Below, piece by piece: positions 3,608-62,399 of a stretch of 64,000 nt of DNA. Every line of letters starts with the position of its first letter. The first letter of the stretch is position 1. Origin of the DNA: Dendrobates tinctorius (Eukaryota); NCBI RefSeq assembly GCF_039654945.1, contig NW_027361671.1:103292001-103356000 (forward strand), in the 5' to 3' direction. Under the pieces are notes generated by a model. The model was given only the letters and a program-made list of their open reading frames with translations. It had not been told where the DNA came from and searched no databases. The position numbers were made by a program, and so were the translations under genes.

Positions 3608-6600
3608 TTACCCCCCCCCCCGAGGAGGGGTCACCGAACCCTCATCCATGCCACCAGGCTGATCAGGATGGGCCCGGTGAAAAGCACGAACCAATTTATT
3701 GGCATGAATATCAGAGGCAGAGACCCAAGAATTATCCTCCAGCCCTTAACCCTTCCATTTGACCAAATACTGGAGTCTCCGTCTAACCAAACGAGAATCC
3801 AATATTTTCTCTACCTCATATTCCACATTGCCTTTAACCAATACAGGATCAGGAGGTGCCGCCACAGGAACTACTAGCTCTACAAACCTCTTCAACAGTG
3901 ACTTGTGAAATACGTTATGGATTTTGAACGTAACTGGAAGAGCCAATCGAAAAGAAACAGGATTAAGAATCTCCAAAATCTTATAAGGTCAAATAAATCT
4001 TGGCTTAAATTTTGGAGATGCAACCTTCATAGGAATATTCTTAGACGACAGCCAAACCATATCACACACTTTAAACCGGGGACCAATGGTCCTACGCCGG
4101 TTGGAAAAACGCTGGGCCTTTTCCTGAGAGAGTGAAAACTTATCCACCACTTGGTCCCATATCTGCTGCATTCTCACAACCACAGTGTCCACACCTGGGC
4201 AGGACGAATATTCCACTTGCCCTGAAGAGAATCGAGGAAGAAACCCAAAATTACAGAAAAAGGGTGACATCAGAGTGGCAGAACTAGCTCTATTGTTCAG
4301 CGCAAATTCGGCCAAGGGCAAAAATGAGACCCAATCATCTTCATCAGCAGATATAAAACATCTTAAATAAGACTCCAGGGTCTGGTTTGTTCTCTAAGTC
4401 TGCCCATTGGTCTGGGGATGAAACGCGGAGGAGAAGGATAACTGAATTCCCAGATTGGAACAAAAGGCTTTCCAGAATCTGGAAACAAACTGGACCCCTC
4501 TATCGGACACAATGTTCTCAGGAATCCCGTGTAACCGAACCACCTGTTGTAAAAACAAGGGCACCAACTCAGCGGAAGATGGCAACTTTGGGAGTGGTAC
4601 AAGATGGACCATCTTCGAAAATCTATCACAAATCACCCACTCTGAGAGACAGGAAGATCAGAAATAAAATCCATTGAGATATGGGTCCATGGCCTCCTGG
4701 GCACCGGCAGGGGCATCAGCAACCCACTAGAACGAGAACAGGGTTTAGACCGAGAACAAGTCCCACAGGACTGTACAAAATTCCTGACATCACGAGATAA
4801 GGCAGGCCACCAAAACGACCGACTCACCAAATCTCTGGTACCAAAAATACACGGATGACCAGCCAATGCGGAGCAATGGACTTCAGACATCACTCTGTTT
4901 CTCCACTGGTCAGGAACATACAATCTTCCCATAGGGCAACGCTCAGGTTTATCCTCCTGAAATTCCTCCAGGGCGCGTCTCAAATCGGGCAAAATGGCAG
5001 AAAGAACTACCCCCTCACCTAGGATAGTAGTAGGCTGGGTCACATTAAGAGAATCAGCAAAGAAACTCCTAGAAAGGGCGTCTGCCTTTACATTCTTAGT
5101 GCCCGGAAGAAAAGAGACCACAAAATTAAAACGCGTGAAAAACAAGACCCATCTAGCCTGTCTAGGATTCAAGCGTTTGGCCGACTCCAAATAAATCAGA
5201 TTCTTGTGATCGGTGAGGACCACAAATTGATGTCTAGCTCCCTCCAACCAATGTCTCCACTCCTCAAATGCCCATTTCATGGCCAACAATTCCCGATTCC
5301 CCACATCATAGTTGCATTCAGATGGGGAGAACTTTCGAGAAAAGAAGGCACAGGGATTCATCTTAGAAGTCACAGGGTCTTTTTGGGACAACACAGCTCC
5401 TGCACCAATCTCAGAAGCGTCCACCTCCACTTGAAATGGAAGTGAGACATCAGGTTGCCGTAAAACTGGAACTGAAGTAAATCTCCGCTTAAGCTCCTGA
5501 AATGCTGAAACCGCCTCAGGAGACCAATTCAACACATCAGCTCCCTTCTTGGTCAGATCAGTCAGTGGTTTGACAATACTAGAAAAATTGCCTATAAATT
5601 TACGATAGAAATTAGAAAAACCCAAAAACTTCTGGAGAGCCTTCAAAGAAGTAGGCTGAACCATAAATGGCCTGTACCTTGGCCGGGTCCATTTCAATAG
5701 TCGATGGAGACAAGATAAATCCCAAAAATGAAATCCTATGTACACCAAAGAGGCACTTCAATCCCTTAACAAACAGGGAATTCTCCCTCAAAATCCGGAA
5801 CACAGTCCGGACATGTTACACCTGGGAATCCCAATCACTAGAAAAGATCAAAATATCATCCAGATAGATGATCAAAAACTTATCCACAAAGTCTCGGAAA
5901 ATATCATTCATAAAGGATTGGAAGACAGAAGGGGCATTAGTGAGCCCAAAAGGCATCACCAGGTACTCAAAATGTCCCTCCGGAGTATTAAACGCCGTCT
6001 TCCATTCATCCCCGTGCTTGATCCGAATAAGATTATACGCCCCCCTGAGGTCAAGCTTAGTAAACCAGCAGGCACTCTTAACACTGGAGAATAAATCAGA
6101 CATCAGAGGTAACGGGTACTGATATTTAACCGTCATCTTGTTAAGGGAACGATAATCAATACACGGTCTTAATGAACCATCTTTCTTGGCCACAAAAAAA
6201 AAACCAGCGCCTAACGGTGACGAGGATGGTCTAATATGACCCTTCTCCAACGACTCCTTAATATAAGATCGCATAGCATCATGTTCGGGTACAGATAAGT
6301 TGAAAAGCCGACCCTTGGGAAATTTACACCCAGGCATCAACTCAATTGCACAGTCATAACTCCTATGAGGAGGCAAAGACGCAGATTTACTCTCACGAAA
6401 TACATCAGAGAAATCAGCCAGATAATCAGGAATAACATGAGACTGAGGAGAGGTGGAGAAAACAGGGGCGTCCCTAAGAACACACTGACAACCCCAACTC
6501 ACCACAGACACAGATTTCCAATCCAAAACTGGGTTATGAGTTTGCAACCAGGGGAAACCCAGAACAATAGTATCATGCAAATTATGCAGCACCAAAAATT

Positions 6601-7645
6601 TACAATTTTCTTGGTGGTCTGGGGCAACTCGCATTATCACCTGGGTCCAAAACTTAGGTTTATTCTCCGCCAAAGGAGTGGCATCAATACCCCTCAAAGG
6701 AATGGGCGTCTGCAGAGGCATCATGGAAAAACCACAACGTTTAGCAAAGTCCAAATCCATCAGATTCAGAGCTGCTCCTGAATCCACAAAAGCCTTAGTG
6801 GAAAATGTGGACAAGGAGCAGATCAGAGTAATTGCCAAAAGGAACTTAGGTTGTATACTGCCCACAGCAAATGTGTGTGCAAAACATTTCTCTCGTTTAG
6901 GGCAGACAGAAATAGTATGAGAGGCGTCTCCACAGAAAAAACACAGCTTATTACGCCTTCTAAACTCCCGACGTTGTGCCCTAGACAAAACCCCATCACA
7001 TTGCATAGGTTCAGACATTTGTTCAAAAAGTGGCAGTGCCTCCCGTGTAGTTTTACGTTCATGTAAACGCCGATCAACTTGAATGGCTAATGACATAGAG
7101 CCATCCAGACCAGAGGGAACAGGAAATCCCACCATAACATCTTTTATGGTCTCTGACAAACCTTTCCAAAAGAGAGCTGCCAATGCTCTATCATTCCATA
7201 TAGTAAGGACCGCCCACTTTCGGAATTTTTGACAGTACAACTCTGCAGGATCCTGACCCTGGTTTAATGCCATCAGGGTTCTCTCAGCTTGATCAACGGT
7301 ATTAGGTTCATCATACAACAACCCCAAGGCCTTAAAAAATGCATCCACATTAGTCAGAATAGGATTTTCAGGTGTCAGAGAAAAAACCCAATCTTGGGGA
7401 TCGCCGCCCAGCAAGGAGATGACAACTTTAACCTGCTGCACAGAGCTCCCCGATGAGTTAGGCTTCAAAGCAAGAAATAATTTACAATTATTCTTAAAAT
7501 TCAGAAATTTAGACCAATCCCCAGAAAACACATCAGGAGTAGGAATCTTGGGTTCAGCAGCATGTGACTGAATAAGGTAGGTGGAAATTCCCTGTACTTC
7601 AGCAGCAAGTTGCTCCACACGATCAGACAGTTGCTTAATCTCCAT
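3608..7645 (-). pseudogene. gag-pol copy 1 (gag, CCHC knuckle, protease, RT, RNase H, integrase, chromodomain), disrupted
   Basis: ORF 5816-7645 has [20 protein letters not shown] and YLDD. ORF 4633-5748 has RNase H DAS...ELLA...TDH...ADALSR and the integrase HHCC. Integrase core SDRG...HPQTNGQT; chromodomain EYEVEKILDSR...YLVKWKG. Several stops and frameshifts. Confidence 0.95.
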
Positions 7646-7769
7646 TAGGAAAAAAAAATCCTCCTACAGCCCCTGAAAAAAAAAGGAAAAAATACATAGA
7701 AAAAAAGTGTCAGAATTTCTTTCCTGCTTTTGAGTACCCTAGAATCTGCGGTATGGGGGCTGGTGATTC

Positions 7770-8636
7770 TGTTATGAATGGGAAACCGAGAAGGAAAAAA
7801 CAAGACAAAAGCTAAGTCTCAGAAAACCAGAGAAGTTGATAACTATGCAGATCCCTGATCTTAACCGCACAACTAGAAGCAGTCGTGGAGCGTTCCTACG
7901 TTGGTCCTAGACGCCTCGTCACAACCGGAGAATTACATAAGCCTAAAGCAGGAAAAGAGGAAAACTAACTGCCCCAGAGCAGACCCCAAAGGAGAGACAG
8001 CCCCCCACATGTATTGACGGTGAAACAAGATGAAAATACAAACAAAGGCAGGAAAATAGGCTGAGCAAACGATGGGGCCCGGCTAACTATAAAGGACAGA
8101 AAAGGAAAGACACTGTCTGCAATCTGCCAAAAACAACCTACAAAAATATTGTCCAACACTTCTGATAGCAAAATTAACCCTGAAGTCACTAGACTTCTAA
8201 ACCTATATCAGCACTCTGAAATATTCTGAGACAGAGCAAAAAAGAGGCCAATTTAATAAGGGACAAAAGCAGATTGGCAAATACTGATTTAAAGAAGTGG
8301 AATTTCAGCATAGACCCAGCAGGGGCAGGCTGATTACACAACAAACTGAATTGACCAACAAGCGCAAGTGTGAACAATAGCAAAAAACAAACTTAACTTG
8401 AGAAGACTGGAAGAGAGCTGAAGTCCAGGACCTAAGAAGCAGACTGAATCACCAGCACCCGGATAGGGCGTCGGCTGTCTTATATCCAGTCTGATACTCC
8501 AGAGATCCAATCGTTATCTTCCTCATCAGGTGGCAGATCACTACCACTTAAACCAACCGCACTACCTCCTGTCACCACCAGAGGGAGAACGGAAGGGGAA
8601 CTCTCAACTGGTGGAGCAGAAAATGAGTTCATGACA
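7770..8636 (-). repeat. Gypsy LTR 2 (shared central LTR)
   Basis: About 4 differences from LTR 3. Flanked by a PBS-like sequence on the left and a PPT on the right. Confidence 0.95.
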
Positions 8637-11600
8637 TTACCCCCCCCCTGAGGAGGGGTCACCGAACCCTCATCCATGCCACCACGCTGATCAGGATGGG
8701 CCCGGTGAAAAGCACGAACCAATTTACTGGCATGAATATCAGAGGCAGAGACCCAAGAATTATCCTCCAGCCCTTAACCCTTCCATTTGACCAAATACTG
8801 GAGTCTCCGTCTAACCAAATGAGAATCCAATATTTTCTCTACCTCATATTCCACATTGCCTTTAACCAATACAGGATCAGGAGGTGCCGCCACAGGAACT
8901 ACTAGCTCTACAAACCTCTTCAACAGTGACTTGTGAAATACGTTATGGATTTTGAACGTAACTGGAAGAGCCAATCGAAAAGAAACAGGATTAAGAATCT
9001 CCAAAATCTTATAAGGTCCAATAAATCTTGGCTTAAATTTTGGAGATGCAACCTTCATAGGAATATTCTTAGATGACAGCCAAACCATATCACACACTTT
9101 AAACCGGGGACCAATGGTCCTACGCCGGTTGGAAAAACGCTGGGCCTTTTCCTGAGAGAGTGAAAACTTATCCACCACTTGGTCCCATATCTGCTGCATT
9201 CTCACAACCACAGTGTCCACACCTGGGCAGGACGAAGATTCCACTTGCCCTGAAGAGAATTGAGGAAGAAACCCAAAATTACAGAAAAAGGGTGACATCA
9301 GAGTGGCAGAACTAGCTCTATTGTTCAGCGCAAATTCGGCCAAGGGCAAAAATGAGACCCAATCATCTTCATCAGCAGATATAAAACATCTTAAATAAGA
9401 CTCCAGGGTCTGGTTTGTTCTCTAAGTCTGTCCATTGGTCTGGGGATGAAACGCGGAGGAGAAGGATAACTGAATTCCCAGATTGGAACAAAAGGCTTTC
9501 CAGAATCTGGAAACAAACTGGACCCCTCTATCGGACACAATGTTCTCAGGAATCCCGTGTAACCGAACCACCTGTTGTAAAAACAAGGGCACCAACTCAG
9601 CGGAAGATGGCAACTTTGGGAGTGGTACAAGATGGACCATCTTCGAAAATCTATCACAAATCACCCAGATAACAGTCATTCTCTGAGAGACAGGAAGATC
9701 AGAAATAAAATCCATTGAGATATGGGTCCATGGCCTCTTGGGCACCGGCAGGGGCATCAGCAACCCACTAGAACGAGAACAGGGTTTAGACCGAGAACAA
9801 GTCCCACAGGACTGTACAAAATTCCTGACATCACGAGATAAGGCAGGCCACCAAAACGACCGACTCACCAAATCTCTGGTACCAAAAATACATGGATGAC
9901 CAGCCAATGCGGAGCAATGGACTTCAGACATCACTCTGTTTCTCCACTGGTCAGGAACATACAACCTTCCCATAGGGCAACGCTCAGGTTTATCCTCCTG
10001 AAATTCCTCCAGGGCGCGTCTCAAATCGGGCAAAATGGCAGAAAGAACTACCCCCTCACCTAGGATAGTAGTAGGCTGGGTCACATTAAGAGAATCAGCA
10101 AAGAAACTCCTAGAAAGGGCGTCTGCCTTTACATTCTTAGTGCCCGGAAGAAAAGAGACCACAAAATTAAAACGCGTGAAAAACAAGACCCATCTAGCCT
10201 GTCTAGGATTCAAGCGTTTGGCCGACTCCAAATAAATCAGATTCTTGTGATCTGTGAGGACCACAAATTGATGTCTAGCTCCCTCCAACCAATGTCTCCA
10301 CTCCTCAAATGCCCATTTCATGGCCAACAATTCCCGATTCCCCACATCATAGTTGCGTTCAGATGGGGAGAACTTTCGAGAAAAGAAGGCACAGGGATTC
10401 ATCTTAGAAGTCACAGGGTCTTTTTGGGACAACACAGCTCCTGCACCAATCTCAGAAGCGTCCACCTCCACTTGAAATGGAAGTGAGACATCAGGTTGCC
10501 GTAAAACTGGAACTGAAGTAAATCTCCGCTTAAGCTCCTGAAATGCTGAAACCACCTCAGGAGACCAATTCAACACATCAGCTCCCTTCTTGGTCAGATC
10601 AGTCAGTGGTTTGACAATACTAGAAAAATTGCCTATAAATTTACGATAGAAATTAGAAAAACCCAAAAACTTCTGGAGAGCCTTCAAAGAAGTAGGCTGA
10701 ACCATAAATGGCCTGTACCTTGGCCGGGTCCATTTCAATAGTCGATGGAGACAAGATAAATCCCAAAAATGAAATCCTATGTACACCAAAGAGGCACTTC
10801 AATCCCTTAACAAACAGGGAATTCTCCCTCAAAATCCGGAACACAGTCCGGACATGTTACACATGGGAATCCCAATCACTAGAAAAGATCAAAATATCAT
10901 CCAGATAGATGATCAAAAACTTATCCACAAAGTCTCGGAAAATATCATTCATAAAGGATTGGAAGACAGAAGGGGCATTAGAGAGCCCAAAAGGCATTAC
11001 CACGTACTCAAAATGTCCCTCCGGAGTATTAAACGCCGTCTTCCATTCATCCCCGTGCTTGATCCGAATAAGATTATACGCCCCCCTGAGGTCAAGCTTA
11101 GTAAACCAGCAGGCACTCTTAACACTGGAGAATAAATCAGACATCAGAGGTAACGGGTACTGATATTTAACCGTCATCTTGTTAAGGGAACGATAATCAA
11201 TACACGGTCTTAATGAACCATCTTTCTTGGCCACAAAAAAAAAAACCAGCGCCTAACGGTGACGAGGATGGTCTAATATGACCCTTCTCCAACGACTCCT
11301 TAATATAGGATCGCATAGCATCATGTTCGGGTACAGATAAGTTGAAAAGCCGACCCTTGGGAAATTTACACCCAGGCATCAACTCAATTGCACAGTCATA
11401 ACTCCTATGAGGAGGCAAAGACGCAGATTTACTCTCACGAAATACATCAGAGAAATCAGCCAGATAATCAGGAATAACATGAGACTGAGGAGAGGTGGAG
11501 AAAACAGGGGCGTCCCTAAGAACACACTGACAACCCCAACTCACCACAGACACAGATTTCCAATCCAAAACTGGGTTATGAGTTTGCAACCAGGGGAAAC

Positions 11601-12686
11601 CCAGAACAATAGTATCATGCAAATTATGCAGCACCAAAAATTTACAATTTTCTTGGTGGTCTGGGGCAACTCGCATTATCACCTGGGTCCAAAACTTAGG
11701 TTTATTCTCCGCCAAAGGAGTGGCATCAATACCCCTCAAAGGAATGGGCGTCTGCAGAGGCGTCATGGAAAAACCACAACGTTTAGCAAAGTCCAAATCC
11801 ATCAGATTCAGAGCTGCTCCTGAATCCACAAAAGCCTTAGTGGAAAATGTGGACAAGGAGCAGATCAGAGTAATTGCCAAAAGGAACTTAGGTTGTATAC
11901 TGCCCACAGCAAATGTGTGTGCAAAACATTTCTCTCGTTTAGGGCAGACAGAAATAGTATGAGAGGCGTCTCCACAGAAAAAACACAGCTTATTACGCCT
12001 TCTAAACTCCCGACGTTGCGCCCTAGACAAAACCCCATCACATTGCATAGGTTCAGACATTTGTTCAAAAAGTGGCAGTGCCTCCCGTGTAGTTTTACGT
12101 TCATGTAAACGCCGATCAACTTGAAGGCTAATGACATAGAGCCATCCAGACCAGAGGGAACAGGAAATCACACCATAACATCTTTTACGGTCTCTGACAA
12201 ACCTTTCCAAAAGAGAGCTGCCAATGCTCTATCATTCCATATAGTAAGGACCGCCCACTTTCGGAATTTTTGACAGTACAACTCTGCAGGATCCTGACCC
12301 TGGTTTAATGCCATCAGGGTTCTCTCAGCTTGATCAACGGTATTAGGTTCATCATACAACAACCCCAAGGCCTTAAAAAATGCATCCACATTAGTCAGAA
12401 AAGGATTTTCAGGTGTCAGAGAAAAAACCCAATCTTGGGGATCGCCGCCCAGCAAGGAGATGACAACTTTAACCTGCTGCACAGAGCTCCCCGATGAGTT
12501 AGGCTTCAAAGCAAAAAATAATTTACAATTATTCTTAAAATTCAGAAATTTAGACCAATCCCCAGAAAACACATCAGGAGTAGGAATCTTGGGTTCTGCA
12601 GCATGTGACTGAATAAGGTAGGTGGAAATTCCCTGTACTTCAGCAGCAAGTTGCTCCACACAATCAGACAGTTGCTTAATCTCCAT
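8637..12686 (-). pseudogene. gag-pol copy 2, disrupted
   Basis: ORFs 12168-12737, 11197-12210, 10857-11234, 9422-10789 and 8774-9349 carry the same domains as copy 1, with shared and private lesions. Confidence 0.95.
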
Positions 12687-12809
12687 TAGGAAAAAAAATC
12701 CTCCTACAGCCCCTGAAAAAAAGAGGAAAAAATACATAGAAAAAAAGTGTCAGAATTTCTTTCCTGCTTTTGAGTACCCTAGAATCTGCGGTATGGGGGC
12801 TGGTGATTC

Positions 12810-18700: not shown

Positions 18701-19918
18701 CACTCACTGGCCACTTTATTAGGTACACCTGTCCAACTGTGTGTTAAGACTTAATTTCTAATCAGCCAATCACATGGCGGCAACTCAGTGCATTTAGGCA
18801 TGTAGACATGGTCAAGACAATCTCCTGCAGTTCAAACCGAGCATCAGTATGGGGAAGAAAGGTGATTTGAGTGCCTTTGAACGTGGCATGATTGTTGGTG
18901 CCAGAAGGGCTGGTCTGAGAATTTCAGAAACTGCTGATCTACTGGGATTTTCACGCACAACCATCTCTAGGGTTTACAGAGAATGGTCCGAAAAAGAAAA
19001 AAAATCCAGTGAGCGGCAGTTCTGTGGCCGGAAATGCCATGTTGATGCCAGAGGTCAGAGGAGAATGGGCAGACTGGTTCGAGCTGATAGAAAGGCAACA
19101 GTGACTCAAATTGCCACCCGTTACAACCAAGGTAGGCAGAAGAGCATCTCTGAACGCACAGTGCGTCGAACTTTGAGGCAGATGGGCTACAGCAGCAGAA
19201 GACCACACTGGGTACCACTCCTCTCAGCTAAGAACAGGAAACTGAGGCTACAATTTGCACAAGCTCATCAAAATTGGACAGTAGATTGGAAAAACGTTGC
19301 CTGGTCTGATGAGTCTCGATTTCTGCTGCGACATTCGGATGGTAGGGTCAGAATTTGGCGTAAACAACATGAAAGCATGGATCCATCCTGCCTTGTATCA
19401 ACGGTTCAGGCTGGTGGTGGTGGTGTCATGGTGTGGGGAATTTTTTCTGGGCACTCTTTGGGCCCCTTGGTACCAATTGAGCATCGTTGCAACGCCACAG
19501 CCTACCTGAGTATTGTTGCTGACCATGTCCATCCCTTTATGACCACAATGTACCCAACATCTGATGGCTACTTTCAGCAGGATAATGCGCCATGTCATAA
19601 AGCTCGAATCATCTCAGATTGGTTTCTTGAACATGACAATGAGTTTACTGTACTCAAATGGCCTCCTCAGTCACCAGATCTCAATCCAATAGAGCATCTT
19701 TGGGATGTGGTGGAACGGGAGATTCGCATCAGGGATGTGCAGCCGACAAATCTGCGCCAACTGTGTGATGCCATCATGTCAATATGGTCCAAAATCTCTG
19801 AGGAATGCTTCCAGCACCTTGTTGAATCTCTGCCATGAAGAATTGAGGCAGTTCTGAAGGCAAAAGGGGGTCCAACCCCTTACTAGCATGGTGTACCTAA
19901 TAAAGTGGCCAGTGAGTG
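18701..19918 (+). mobile_element. Full-length Tc1/mariner transposon, DD36E (Incomer-like)
   Basis: Perfect 29-bp TIRs CACTCACTGGCCACTTTATTAGGTACACC, TA TSD on both sides, 1218 bp long. Confidence 0.95.
18849..19838 (+). CDS. Tc1-family transposase, 329 aa, premature stop 16 codons from the native end
   Basis: HTH N-terminus, WSDES, QQDNA and SPDLNPIEH, with 36 residues between the second D and E. TGA at 19836-19838 is followed in frame by RIEAVLKAKGGPTPY*. Confidence 0.9.
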   Translation: MGKKGDLSAFERGMIVGARRAGLRISETADLLGFSRTTISRVYREWSEKEKKSSERQFCGRKCHVDARGQRRMGRLVRADRKATVTQIATRYNQGRQKSISERTVRRTLRQMGYSSRRPHWVPLLSAKNRKLRLQFAQAHQNWTVDWKNVAWSDESRFLLRHSDGRVRIWRKQHESMDPSCLVSTVQAGGGGVMVWGIFSGHSLGPLVPIEHRCNATAYLSIVADHVHPFMTTMYPTSDGYFQQDNAPCHKARIISDWFLEHDNEFTVLKWPPQSPDLNPIEHLWDVVEREIRIRDVQPTNLRQLCDAIMSIWSKISEECFQHLVESLP

Positions 19919-29049: not shown

Positions 29050-29679
29050 GTACCAGTCAATGGGGTCTCCCAGTGTTTTGTTTTCCCCGTTTTCATATTA
29101 ATATTAGTGGTACAACAGGTCCTTGTACATCTTTTCCTGTCATCAGTCAGTTTTAGTAAATCCCAATATCTGTCACTGATGTGAACACATTTCTCCTGTC
29201 TTGTTTGCCTTGGGACTGGGTTGCTGTGTCCTGTGCTTGTTGTATGAAGCCATTGTGTGTGAACCTAGATGGATGCAGTAAAGGGGATGTACTGTATTGT
29301 GATATTGCTTTCTGTAGTACGTGATCTTGCCTCCATATAGGTGCCAGGGATAACTGTCACCGAGAGCGCACACTGACTGCAGTGTTGATGGGATGGTGAT
29401 GCCTATGTAAGGCCACGTTCACACAGTCAGTATTCGGGCATTATTTGTAGTGGCTGATAAATACAGAAGTGGTGACGTGTTTCTATTATACTTATCCTCT
29501 GACTGTTCCACTGCTGATTTTGGCTTAGAAATACTGAGGTAAAATACTGAACGTGTGAACGTGGCCTAAGTTTGCATTACTGCGCCTCATCTTTAGGTTA
29601 TGTTCCAAAATCCACATAAAAACACTTCAAATACACTTGAACACGCTTCCTGATACCCACATTACTGTTCATATAGCAA

Positions 29680-30870
29680 CATAGAACAAAACATACACAT
29701 TAAAAATGGTACATGATTAGACGCGTGGTACGTCCTTTTAAAGCATGGTATCAATTATACAGATTTTTCAGGATACGATTATCATCCTTAATTCAAATAT
29801 ATTAACCTCTAGAAATTATTTATCCACATTAATAGAAGGAAAAACCATATGCATTTTATAAATATCTCTAGTTATTTACATAGTTTTATTAAAAATTATT
29901 TTAAAAAATGCATCATAGTCTTATATTCTTTATTGTTATACTGCCACCTAGTGGTGCAAAAAATACATTATCCTTCTAAATTCATAAATATCCAACTTCA
30001 TTTATTTATTATCCTCATATATGAATTGTAAAGAGCACCGGGCACTACTCAATTGCATAAAAATAAAAAATCAATGAAGTGCATAATGCAAAAATAGTTT
30101 ATAGAAATGTGCATGCATAGTGCAGAAACGCTTATTATAAATAGCGCCAGGCAGTCTTCACAACACAAACATACATGAGCCTCAGAACAACATACCACAG
30201 GTTAAATGCTGAAGGACCACATGTAGGAATCCCCTTAACGTGCGTTTCGCGTTATTGCTTCTTCCGAAACGCGCATTAAGGGGATTCCTACATGTGGTCC
30301 TTCAGCATTTAACCTGTGGTATGTTGTTCTGAGGCTCATGTATGTTTGTGTTGTGAAGAATGCCTGGCGCTATTTATAATAAGCGTTTCTGCACTATGCA
30401 TGCACATTTCTATAGACTATTTTTGCATTATGCACTTTATTGATTTTTTATTTTTATGCAATTGAGTAGTGCTCGGTGCTCTTTACAATTCATATATGGG
30501 GATTATAAATAAATGAAGTTGGATATTTATGAATTTATAGAAGGGTAATGTATTTTTTGCACCACTAGGTGGCAGTATAACAATAAAGAATATACTGTAT
30601 ATACTCGTGTATAAGGACGACTTTATGAGACGATAATTGTGTCCTGAAGAAAATCTGTATAAATTGATACCACGCTTTAAAAGGACGTACCACGCGTCTA
30701 ATCATGTACCATTTTTAATATGTATGTTTTGTTATATGTCATATCAAATAAAGAATTGTGTTTTTTTTAATAGTTTCCGAAGTATTTTTTTTTTTTTTTT
30801 TTTTTTTTTTGTAGGATAGTTTTAAATATTGGTTGGGAAACTTCATATTTTTGTCCAAATTATCGGATAT
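29680..30870. mobile_element. Penelope-like fold-back insertion with 15-bp TSD
   Basis: Inverted arms about 29922-30249 / 30265-30594 and about 29680-29775 / 30640-30739. ctgttcatatagcaa duplicated at 29665-29679 and 30871-30885. Hammerhead-like GAAACGC motif at the axis. Confidence 0.65.
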
Positions 30871-31733
30871 CTGTTCATATAGCAAGCTGTTTTTTTTTTT
30901 TTTGTTTTTTTTTGTACCAATAAGATTTGTAAAACTACACTGAGGAAGAAAATGAAATGACTTGACACTTCAATAACCACCAAACCGTCTGCAAAAACAC
31001 ACAATGGGGAAAAAGAACGCTTAGTACTTCACACACAGCGTTTATGGAGCAAAAGCCTGCTCTCTTGGCAGTTAAAAAGATGCGGTTTGCTGCTTTTTTT
31101 TTTTTTTGCGGATTACTTGTGATTTGTCTGCAGCACCTGATAAAGTTTTATTCACCAAAAATGCAGCCAAACTTGTTTACTGTGGTGTTATATTTACTTT
31201 TTGCCGCATTTTTGCACTCTTATTTATTTTTATGGGTGACAAAAATGCTGAACAAGTTGATGTGTTACAGATTTAAAAAAAAAAAAAAAAAAAAGATCGT
31301 GCTCAAATTCAGTCGGCAAAAAAAAAAAATGCATGAGATTTCTGAAATCTCATAGCTATTGCTGGCATTGTAAAATATGGTACATCTTTTCTGTAGGGGA
31401 AAAAAAAAACAGCAACAAAAACGCTGCTTGTGAACTTAGCATTAGAGTATGTGCACACTGAGTTTTTGGAGCAGAAACTCTCCAAATCCTCGTCAAAATT
31501 GCTCAAAAATTGGGAGTTTATTCTCGGTGTGCACATAGCCCTAGAACCGAAAATCTGGTCAGAGTTAGATTTCTCTTGGGATTTTTCGACTTTAAGAAAA
31601 AAAAAAAAGCCTTAGTATGAACATAAATATACAGTGAAAGTATTCTTGGTTGCAAATTTTGATCTACCTTGACATTGCAGAAACTTCAGAAACTAATGAT
31701 CTGTTACGAAAGGCATTGCTTCTTCCACATGCT

Positions 31734-31972
31734 NNNNNNNNNNNNNNNNNNNNNNNNNNNNNNNNNNNNNNNNNNNNNNNNNNNNNNNNNNNNNNNNNNN
31801 NNNNNNNNNNNNNNNNNNNNNNNNNNNNNNNNNNNNNNNNNNNNNNNNNNNNNNNNNNNNNNNNNNNNNNNNNNNNNNNNNNNNNNNNNNNNNNNNNNNN
31901 NNNNNNNNNNNNNNNNNNNNNNNNNNNNNNNNNNNNNNNNNNNNNNNNNNNNNNNNNNNNNNNNNNNNNNNN
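31734..31972. other. Assembly gap (239 N)
   Basis: Run of n inside a VPS29 intron. Confidence 0.99.
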
Positions 31973-59470: not shown

Positions 59471-59730
59471 CTACGCAAAGAAAAAAAAATACCAGAACTA
59501 TATTATTACGCTCAAGTAAATCTAGCTATAAGTCACAGACCATTTGGACAACCAAATGGCCACTTTAGACCATAACAGATGTTCACAAAACACAGATAAA
59601 TGTAAAATAGTTGATCTGCCAAGTTGGACTTTTACTTTTTTTTTCATTGAGACCGACAATATCTTAAAGGGTTTGTCTGGGCATATAATATATTTACGAT
59701 AGGTAATCCTTGTCAGATTGTGTGGTCTAA

Positions 59731-60079
59731 AGGGCCGTTTACATTTAGCAATGCACCAGCGATGCGACCAGCATCGCTAAATGATCGCTAGTGAGCTTCC
59801 ACACAGGAAGATCTCACAGCGATGCAGCAGCGACGCAGCGCACGATACTTACCTTTCACACACAGCGATGAAGACGTCCTCCCGCCTCCACGCGTCGCTC
59901 GTCGTCACAGCAGGAAGCTGACGACGAGAAATGGAGCCGGACATTATCGCGCGATCAGCGATGGACAGCGGGGGAGCCGGTCGGAGGTAAGTATCACACA
60001 TAGCGGTATCGCTAGCGATATCGCTATAAAGTCACAAAATCGGTGACGTTATAGCGATATTTCTATGTGTAAAACCCCC
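59731..60079. mobile_element. Harbinger-like MITE (cagcgat family); an inverted relative lies at about 61115-61438
   Basis: taa-AGGGCCGTTTACA...TGTGTAAAACCCCC-ttaa; shares blocks with the reverse complement of 61115-61438. Confidence 0.65.
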
Positions 60080-60193
60080 TTAACACTCGGTCACCCCCAG
60101 AGGAGCTAATTAGCAGCTGGAGTTAATAAAAGCCGATTAGTGGAGAATGCCAAGTGTCAGAGCCCAGTAAATCTAATATTCACTTATCTTAAA

Positions 60194-61083
60194 CTAGATT
60201 ATGGCCCGATGCTATCGCATCGAGAGGATGGAGGACGGAGGTATCACACATGGCGATATCGCTAGCAATATCGCTGCGGGTTAAAACCCCCTTAACTCAA
60301 AAAGCTCAAAAGGGTGAGATTCCATCTATAATAATAAATGCCCTAAGCAACTTCCGGTTGTAACAATTTCCGTCCAGTTGTAACCGGTGACGTCACCGCA
60401 CACCTCTTTCCATGTTAACCCTCAACACACACACTCCTCTCACCTTTCACCATCTCCACTCACTCTTTCACTCCACATACGACCCTTTCTCTCACTCCGT
60501 CTCTCATACTCACGCCGTCATCGCCGCTGATCCACGATCCCGACGTCGTCCTCGCCGGCGACATGTTCTTGCGGCGACGCCATCTTGAGTATCGCGGGAT
60601 TTCGCCGATCCAAAATAGCATCGGTACAGGAACATGTCACCGGCGTGGATGCCGTCGGGATCCAAAATGGCGTCGGCGAAATCTCGCGAGATTTTGCCGA
60701 CGCCATTTTGGATCCCGACGTCCTCCACGCCGGCGACATGTTCTTGCGGCGACGCCATCTTGACTATCGTGGGATTTCGCCGATCCAAAATGGCGTCACC
60801 GCAAGAACATGTCGCCGGCGTGGAGGACGTCTGGATCCAGGATGGCGCCGGCGGAAGAAGATGTCGGGGATCGTGGATCAGCGGCGATGACGGCGTGAGT
60901 ATGAGAGACGGAGTGAGAGAAAGGGTCGTATGTGGAGTGAAAGAGTGAGTGGAGATGGTGAAAGGTGAGAGGAGTGTGTGTGTTGAGGGTTAACATGGAA
61001 AGAGGTGTGCGGTGACGTCACCGGTTACAACTGGACGGAAGTTGTTACAACCGAAAGTTGCTTAGGGCATTTATTATTATAGA
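60194..61083 (-). mobile_element. Non-autonomous Helitron with an internal fold-back
   Basis: Minus strand A|TCTATAATAATAAA ... cgatgc-gata-gcatcgggccataat-CTAG|T, giving the canonical termini and A/T target. Confidence 0.7.
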
Positions 61084-61175
61084 TGGAATCTCACCCTTTT
61101 GAGCTTTTTGAGTTAAGGGGGTTTTAACCCGCAGCGATATTGCTAGCGATATCGCCATGTGTGATACCTCCGTCC
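60233..61175. repeat. 943-bp palindrome: 309-bp arms (2 mismatches) around a multi-hairpin CpG-rich core
   Basis: 60233-60541 is the reverse complement of 60867-61175. Confidence 0.95.
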
Positions 61176-62399
61176 AGCTCCCCCGCTGTCTGTTGCTGAT
61201 CGCGCAGCTCCATTTCTCCTCGGGCGCTTCCTGCTGGCGCCGACGAGCGACGCAGACGGGAGGACGTCAGGATCGCCTCGTCTGAAAGGTAAGTAACGAC
61301 CGCTGTATCGCTGCTGCATCGCTGTGAGATCTGCCTGTTTGGCAGCTCACTAGCGACCATTTAGCAATGCACCAGCGATCCTGACCGGGTCGTATCGTTG
61401 TCGGGATCGCTGGTGCATCAATAAAAGTAAAGGGGCCTTTAATGTGACCATACAGGTTGTATACAGCTGAAATTAGTCATTCCTGTATGCCTCCTAGATG
61501 ATGCCTTGTACAGTAAAAAAAAAAATCATCTTTTATAGCTTCGATCTGCCAGGCTATGGGGTGTAAAAAATCTTGTATAATGAAGACCAGAGGCAGTCTT
61601 ATCGTCCAGGAAGCGTACGTCCCATAACCTGAAAGAGCGAAACTGTGAAAGATTATTTTTGCTGAACAAAGCATCATCGAGGAGTCATACAGGTATGACT
61701 AATTTCACCTGTATACAATATTCACCTGCATACAATAGTCCATATTAATAACTCAAAAAGGTGACAGATTCCCTTGAAGGACTAGTTTTTAAAATTGTAT
61801 GCTCAGCCAACCCCTTTAGTTAGTGCAACACACCTTCAAAGTATCCTCTATTCCTTTGTTGTACGGATGATTGGAATTTATTGTTTCTAGTAATTTCTCG
61901 CTTAATATAGTCTGACTGTATTGTTCTTCAGGGTTAGGCCCTGTTGACATTGTGCATTATATTTTTGTTTTTGTTTTTTGGCTTCCCAGTGATTTCAACA
62001 GCAAGAATGGCACAGTTTGCATCAATTCTCTTGTTAAAAAAAAAAATCGCTAATGAGTCATTGATCCTAGTCGCAAAATTAATCAGTTGCAACCGATGTG
62101 GCTCCGTTAATATGTTATTATTTAGAGATATGAAACCATCATGAACAGAGCTTAACTGGTCAGAATTCTAGCAATATGTCTTTCACATGATCATTACTTT
62201 GTCTTGAATATATATTTTAGGTTGGCCATAGAGAATATTGTGTCCATCTTGTTAAAGGCATTTATTAATTTATTACAACAACGGTACCTGGGGGGGGGAT
62301 TGGTTCCGATTAAGAGAAATCTTCCTCATTGCATATGGCAAGATACTGTGCACAATTTTCCATGTTGCAGATGACTTTTTTTCTTTTATTTCATCTCAG

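Follow-up and report, generated by a model that had tools for sequence, protein, structure and literature searches.

The window analysed here, a stretch of 64,000 nucleotides from Dendrobates tinctorius, contains several transposable elements, among them a non-autonomous Helitron that runs along the minus strand from 61083 to 60194. Helitrons are rolling-circle transposons. Elsewhere in the window, long open reading frames on the minus strand at 4633-12737 encode gag, aspartyl protease, reverse transcriptase, RNase H and integrase, and belong to a Ty3/gypsy-type LTR retrotransposon; its RNase H-integrase part is present in duplicate and suggests that there are two copies, partial or in tandem. 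On the plus strand, an open reading frame of 329 amino acids at 18849-19838 carries HTH_Tnp_Tc3_2 and DDE_3 domains, as in a Tc1/mariner-type transposase. When the whole window was scanned against Rfam, no family reached the gathering threshold, and this includes 29665-30885, where an earlier note on this DNA, made from its letters, had claimed that the core of a hammerhead ribozyme lies within a fold-back element.

The Helitron is inserted at ...TTAAA|TGGAAT... in a 137-bp spacer of non-repeat DNA that separates two MITE copies. On the side of its 3′ end lie 108 bp of this spacer (60086-60193), which end in ...TTAAA and supply the minus-strand T that follows CTAG; on the side of its 5′ end lie the remaining 29 bp (61084-61112), beginning with the minus-strand A at 61084 that precedes the terminal TC. 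MITE copy A (59727-60085, plus strand) starts at its outer end with TAAAGGGCCGTTTAC and finishes at its inner end with ...AAAACCCCCTTAAC. Copy B (61113-61441, minus strand) is inverted with respect to copy A and about 80% identical to it. Once the Helitron is removed, the two stand as full, inverted copies only 137 bp apart. The possibility that MITE A, spacer and MITE B formed one palindromic MITE that the Helitron split was considered and rejected, since each half has the complete inner end ...AAAACCCCCTTAAC and the two are therefore full copies. Copy B is without a 38-bp central hairpin segment that is found in copy A and in most family contigs (contig joint 60275 to 61133). To the right of copy B, 61457-61522 and 61653-61718 form a 66-nt inverted repeat (88%) around a 130-nt spacer, probably another small inverted-repeat element.

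Both ends of the Helitron lie where the earlier note had placed them. On the minus strand, the element begins with TC at 61083-61082, opening with TCTATAATAAT, and its start reads TCTATAATAATAAATGCC directly after the host A at 61084. Its 3′ end, ...GCGATAGCATCGGGCCATAATCTAG|T, finishes at 60194, so that ...CGATGCGATAGCATCGGGCCATAATCTAG is followed by the host T, and the terminal CTAG (60197-60194, minus strand) conforms to CTRR. A subterminal hairpin at 60205-60224 has an 8-bp stem and a 4-nt loop (-6.6 kcal/mol, z = -2.7), the stem stopping 11 nt short of the 3′ end. Insertion occurred between A and T (minus-strand flanks ...CCA|TC ... CTAG|TTTA); these flanks are not repeats of each other, and the element has neither a target-site duplication nor terminal inverted repeats. 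Logan contigs from four public runs were placed on 59900-61400 at a likeness of at least 90%. The runs represent two samples and two studies, three of them coming from one sample and the fourth from the other study. Thousands of contigs fall on the Helitron body, in all four runs at no less than 90% identity, and on the MITEs, which makes both high-copy repeats. TC and CTAG at the ends, a subterminal hairpin, insertion between A and T and a body present in many copies together give the element the structure of a canonical Helitron, as far as sequence features can define one. Identity with the Xenopus family Heli1Xen1 was rejected: TC...CTAG is common to both, but the hairpin differs, that of Heli1Xen1 being CCCGTTA...TAACGGG (PMC12001565). 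Within the 64-kb window, no other family copies were found by blastn self-comparison or by using both termini as patterns with up to 3 mismatches, and scans of metagenome contigs for the 5′ and the 3′ terminal sequences each gave 0 matches.

The unusual feature of this Helitron is a long inverted repeat that crosses its 5′ boundary. An inverted-repeat search gives arms at 60233-60541 and 60867-61175, each of 309 nt, 99% complementary and 325 nt apart; when 60233-61175 is aligned globally to its own reverse complement, the arms are free of indels and have two mismatches, one at 60354/61054 and the other at 60367/61041. The repeat is thus confirmed as far beyond chance, and the two methods return the coordinates and the mismatch count of the 309-bp inverted copy first described. 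The right arm consists of 217 bp of the element (61083-60867) and 92 bp of flank (61084-61175), the latter made up of the 29 bp of non-repeat DNA and the inner 63 bp of MITE copy B; these lengths bear out the proposal that the beginning of the Helitron was copied together with outside DNA that includes the end of a MITE. The same is true of the two TC termini said to face each other. The 23-nt 5′ end TCTATAATAATAAATGCCCTAAG has two exact occurrences in the window, at 60325-60347 on the plus strand and at 61061-61083 on the minus strand, where none would be expected by chance.

Two further aspects of the structure had been missed. One, the part of each arm that is normal for the family, is considered below. 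The other is that the whole of 60233-61175 is nearly palindromic (87% overall), because the centre of the element is itself a tandem repeat whose units are composed of inverted halves. This CpG-rich centre (60542-60866; GC 0.59, CpG observed/expected 1.57) is an array of a 175-bp repeat in 1.8 copies (60536-60853). Each unit consists of two inverted halves of about 87 bp that are 79-91% complementary. A partial unit of 35 bp (60832-60866) lacks a counterpart on the left side. The array also contains GCCATnTT motifs, which appear YY1-like. The single strand of the entire region is predicted to fold at -440 kcal/mol (z = -35), so that snap-back of one arm onto the other would be highly favourable.

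The contigs allow the ordinary state of the family at this site to be read. In all four runs they join 60229/60230 to 60399/60400 and skip 168-169 bp, the insert at the joint being CGATATCAT or the 9-nt CGATAGCAT. Depths at these joints range from 4 to 168, most being 24-168, which points to many copies and not to an allele of the Helitron locus. Where contigs end loosely, they depart from the sequence of the locus at the same places: beyond 60230 one reads CGATAGCATCACACCTCTTGCCATGT (one run), and ahead of 60399 another reads ...GGAGGATGCGATAGCAT (another run). The alignment to family copies that the earlier note had called for therefore gives a normal joint that passes from 60230 through 9 nt to 60399, without the 92 bp. 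Because the joints skip 60231-60398, 143 of the 309 bp of inverted repeat belong to the normal structure of the element. Few positions vary among family contigs inside the arms and many do so in the array, from which near-perfect arms seem to be a family trait.

From these data we infer that the body of the family is already foldback, comprising a unique 5′ tip of 74 bp, an arm of 143 bp, the palindromic 175-bp array, the inverted 143-bp arm, 9 nt, and a 37-bp 3′ end with the hairpin and CTAG. This arrangement is pieced together from short contigs of about 80-135 nt, with the copy at 60194-61083, the only one in the window, supplying the arm length. In that copy the corresponding parts are the 5′-terminal 74 bp (61010-61083, minus strand), with the TC and an AT-rich start; the 5′-proximal arm (60867-61009, minus strand), delimited by the repeat search, the family contigs and the alignment; the 3′-proximal inverted arm (60399-60541, plus strand), which is 100% complementary to it; and the 3′-terminal 37 bp (60194-60230, minus strand), common to family copies and containing both the CTAG at 60194-60197 and the stem-loop. 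A perfect 12-bp palindrome, GGTGACGTCACC, with a CRE-like core TGACGTCA by its sequence, is present in the 5′ tip at 61011-61022 and again at 60386-60397, 2 nt away from the point where the unique 5′ tip gives way to the inverted arm of the family.

What is private to the copy at 60194-61083 is accordingly limited to 60231-60398. It comprises three pieces: 2 nt of filler, GA (60231-60232), absent from family copies and from the template, at the place where ordinary copies have CGATAGCAT; an inverted copy of the outside 5′ flank (60233-60324, plus strand), identical to 61084-61175 at 92 of 92 positions; and an inverted copy of the 74-bp 5′ tip (60325-60398, plus strand), with the second TC terminus at 60325. 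Within this stretch, the inner 63 bp of MITE copy B (61113-61175) correspond to 60233-60295, and the 29-bp non-repeat flank to 60296-60324. Taken together, 60233-60398 and 61010-61175 are identical at 164 of 166 positions, and the private DNA directly abuts 60399, the edge of the pre-existing 143-bp inverted homology. At the outer junction there are 0 bp of microhomology, the 2 filler nucleotides are present and 9 ordinary nucleotides are missing. In ordinary copies these 9 nt complete a 12-mer, ATGCGATAGCAT, that is an exact inverted repeat of 60209-60220. Their loss here places the break point in a hairpin-prone spot; this upstream partner of the 3′ hairpin is mostly gone, and the proximal, self-pairing hairpin is kept.

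The direction of copying can be read from the surroundings, in which the right-hand sequence runs on into the rest of MITE B; judged on this, 60233-60324 was derived from the right-hand copy, which is the original. Each arm has since acquired one private change, T at 60367 where the family has C, and A at 61054 where the family has G, essentially all family contigs agreeing in each case with the opposite arm. One change per arm fits divergence in vivo after copying. The two differences over 309 sites correspond to K of about 0.0065, and a substitution rate of 1-2.5e-9 per site per year, which is an assumption and not a result, would then date the extension to roughly 1-3 Myr ago, the Poisson range extending from about 0.2 to more than 10 Myr.

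We think it probable that this copy extended its own hairpin by about 166 bp through self-primed snap-back synthesis, followed by rejoining. The process would begin with a minus-strand DNA 3′ end near 60399, where the 3′-proximal arm has its outer edge, arising either from a break in the hairpin-prone region of the 9 nt and the 12-mer or from a stalled nascent strand. This end, lying in the proposed primer stem 60399-60541, would pair with the complementary 5′-proximal arm of the same strand, and its extension would copy first the 74-bp 5′ tip (61010-61083) and then, past the end of the element, 92 bp of flank (61084-61175). After about 166 nt the new strand would leave its template and be joined to the 3′-terminal 37 bp, with 2 filler nucleotides added and 9 nt lost. 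The hairpin stem would in this way grow from 143 to 309 bp, and the element would gain a second, inward-facing 5′ terminus together with host flank. A beginning of the private DNA at the end of the 143-bp homology is what would be expected if the arm primed synthesis, and a junction without microhomology, with a 2-nt filler and a 9-nt loss, agrees with that of foldback inversions at breaks. It is also because of this filler and the short loss of sequence that we somewhat prefer break repair to a template switch during replication. In an alternative sub-model, a primer in the array would have led to new synthesis of all 309 nt, and the old arm would have been deleted. The core of the original proposal, a recent in-situ fold-back or template switch that placed 5′ flank inside the element, agrees with the extra DNA being an inverted copy of adjacent sequence and with its absence from family copies. 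The part that has to be given up is the treatment of the 309-bp copy as a single new piece, for 143 bp of it (60399-60541) are a normal arm and the likely primer, and only about 166 bp and the 2 filler nucleotides are new.

The same product could have come from recombination or template switching between molecules, be they sister chromatids or homologues, or from a larger inverted duplication that a deletion afterwards shortened. For an inter-molecular exchange, ample homology would be available in the 143-bp arms and the array, and the 35-bp asymmetry at 60832-60866 is evidence of other rearrangements here. More steps are needed on such a route, however, and the combination of a seamless start at the arm edge with a short, filler-bearing second junction is most simply explained by one priming and one end-joining event, so that we regard this origin as unlikely.

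It is also rather improbable, to a closely similar degree, that the extra 168 bp are the product of a polishing error or of a read that was chimeric or folded back, and that the true locus has the ordinary family structure. Palindromes are prone to errors of this kind, and the unique spacer at 60104-60154 has a depth of 0 in all four runs, as does unique DNA generally, so that the contigs carry no support for the junction 60232/60233. Against this, a simple fold-back read would produce a perfect palindrome through the centre, with everything beyond it inverted, whereas the centre here is imperfect and asymmetric and includes a 35-bp indel. Past the 168 bp the sequence resumes with the 3′ end that belongs there and with MITE A, correctly oriented, and an artefact would thus need two precise switches. 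Each arm has, moreover, its own substitution relative to the family base, and the sole assembly gap in the window (31734-31972) is 28 kb from the Helitron.

A more far-reaching version of snap-back extension would make it recurrent and tie it to rolling-circle replication of Helitrons. A strand primed at the 5′ nick, still joined to the upstream flank, would fold onto the inverted arm and copy the flank, host DNA from upstream would be internalised, and some of the products would be mobile. We hold this to be doubtful. Were it true, it could explain an outward growth of the family's 143-bp arms from the palindromic array, and it would constitute a pathway of 5′-flank capture beside 3′ read-through.

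Least probable by far is that the 92 bp are ordinary element sequence in all copies, with the true boundary outside 61083 and nothing captured: the family body is indeed foldback and part of the inverted copy normal, but the contigs skip 60231-60398 in each of the four runs and so contradict it, depth in the bin 61073-61123, to which the 29-bp flank belongs, is 20-60 times below that of the adjoining bins, one family contig terminates at 61084, and the 92 bp continue into MITE B, which is an unrelated repeat, also present as a diverged copy at 59727-60085.

Read as self-primed extension followed by rejoining, the locus offers a clean natural case of a long palindrome growing in the vertebrate germ line, in which both junctions are readable and the ancestral state can be recovered from sister copies of the family. 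It suggests that transposition is not required for a foldback-bodied Helitron to take in its 5′ boundary together with flank from upstream. Later mobilisation of such copies would provide Helitrons with a second means of acquiring host DNA and would give rise to elements in which two 5′ termini oppose each other. As it stands, there is one copy without sign of movement, and the event looks like a one-off accident of repair or replication, of a kind of mutation that is already known. The suggestion that it represents a different route to sequence capture is not supported on these grounds, and the value of the locus is mainly that of a worked case.

Several known processes resemble what is seen here. 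Palindromes that form after a break, in yeast and in mammalian gene amplification, arise when inverted repeats anneal within a strand and prime synthesis, which lengthens the palindrome and yields hairpin-capped or dicentric chromosomes and large amplicons. At this locus, by contrast, synthesis would have halted after about 166 nt and the chromosome been resealed. A closer parallel is found in the foldback inversions at breaks in yeast, in which one end folds onto a nearby inverted homology, Pol delta extends it at this hairpin, and the DNA so made unwinds before NHEJ joins it to the other end (PMC11724301). The resulting insertions range from 2 to about 150 bp, most being below 34 bp, with 0-5 bp of microhomology at the junction and a primer of about 10 nt of microhomology (PMC11724301). 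They share with the present case an inverted duplication of adjacent DNA that starts at the edge of an inverted homology (PMC11724301). The difference is one of scale, since the primer here would be a 143-bp transposon arm and the insert, at about 166 bp, is at the top of the yeast size range (PMC11724301). In quasi-palindrome mutation, as described by the Ripley model, the arm identity of an imperfect inverted repeat is likewise extended with the other arm as template, but such switches change few nucleotides in short hairpins (PMC3820800, PMC7202029, PMC8794818). The extension here covers about 166 nt and crosses a transposon boundary, and its 2-nt filler and 9-nt loss are nearer to end joining than to the clean switch back of the quasi-palindrome model.

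Among transposons, the end bypass or 3′ read-through of Helitrons takes up, as the element transposes, DNA of the downstream (3′) side in direct orientation and gives rise to a new 3′ end (PMC4224331). In both cases, host DNA beside the Helitron ends up between its termini and could travel along (PMC4224331). The flank in the present copy is that of the upstream (5′) side, however; it is inverted and internal, the change took place at the donor site, and the old termini are preserved. End-bypass capture was rejected as its origin for this reason, the family 3′ end having been retained and the captured DNA being upstream, inverted and internal. The origin of Pack-TIR elements by transposition-independent gap filling, or FoSTeST, in which template switching, usually to a nearby source, mends a break or a stalled fork, similarly places non-transposon DNA between the ends of a repetitive, structure-forming DNA transposon (PMC8277862). 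It differs in that it concerns TIR transposons, including the foldback element FB4, and in that the filler is usually not an arm-primed inverted copy of the immediate flank (PMC8277862). The closest kinds of event are thus foldback templated insertion and quasi-palindrome extension and, among transposons, the gap filling of Pack-TIR elements.
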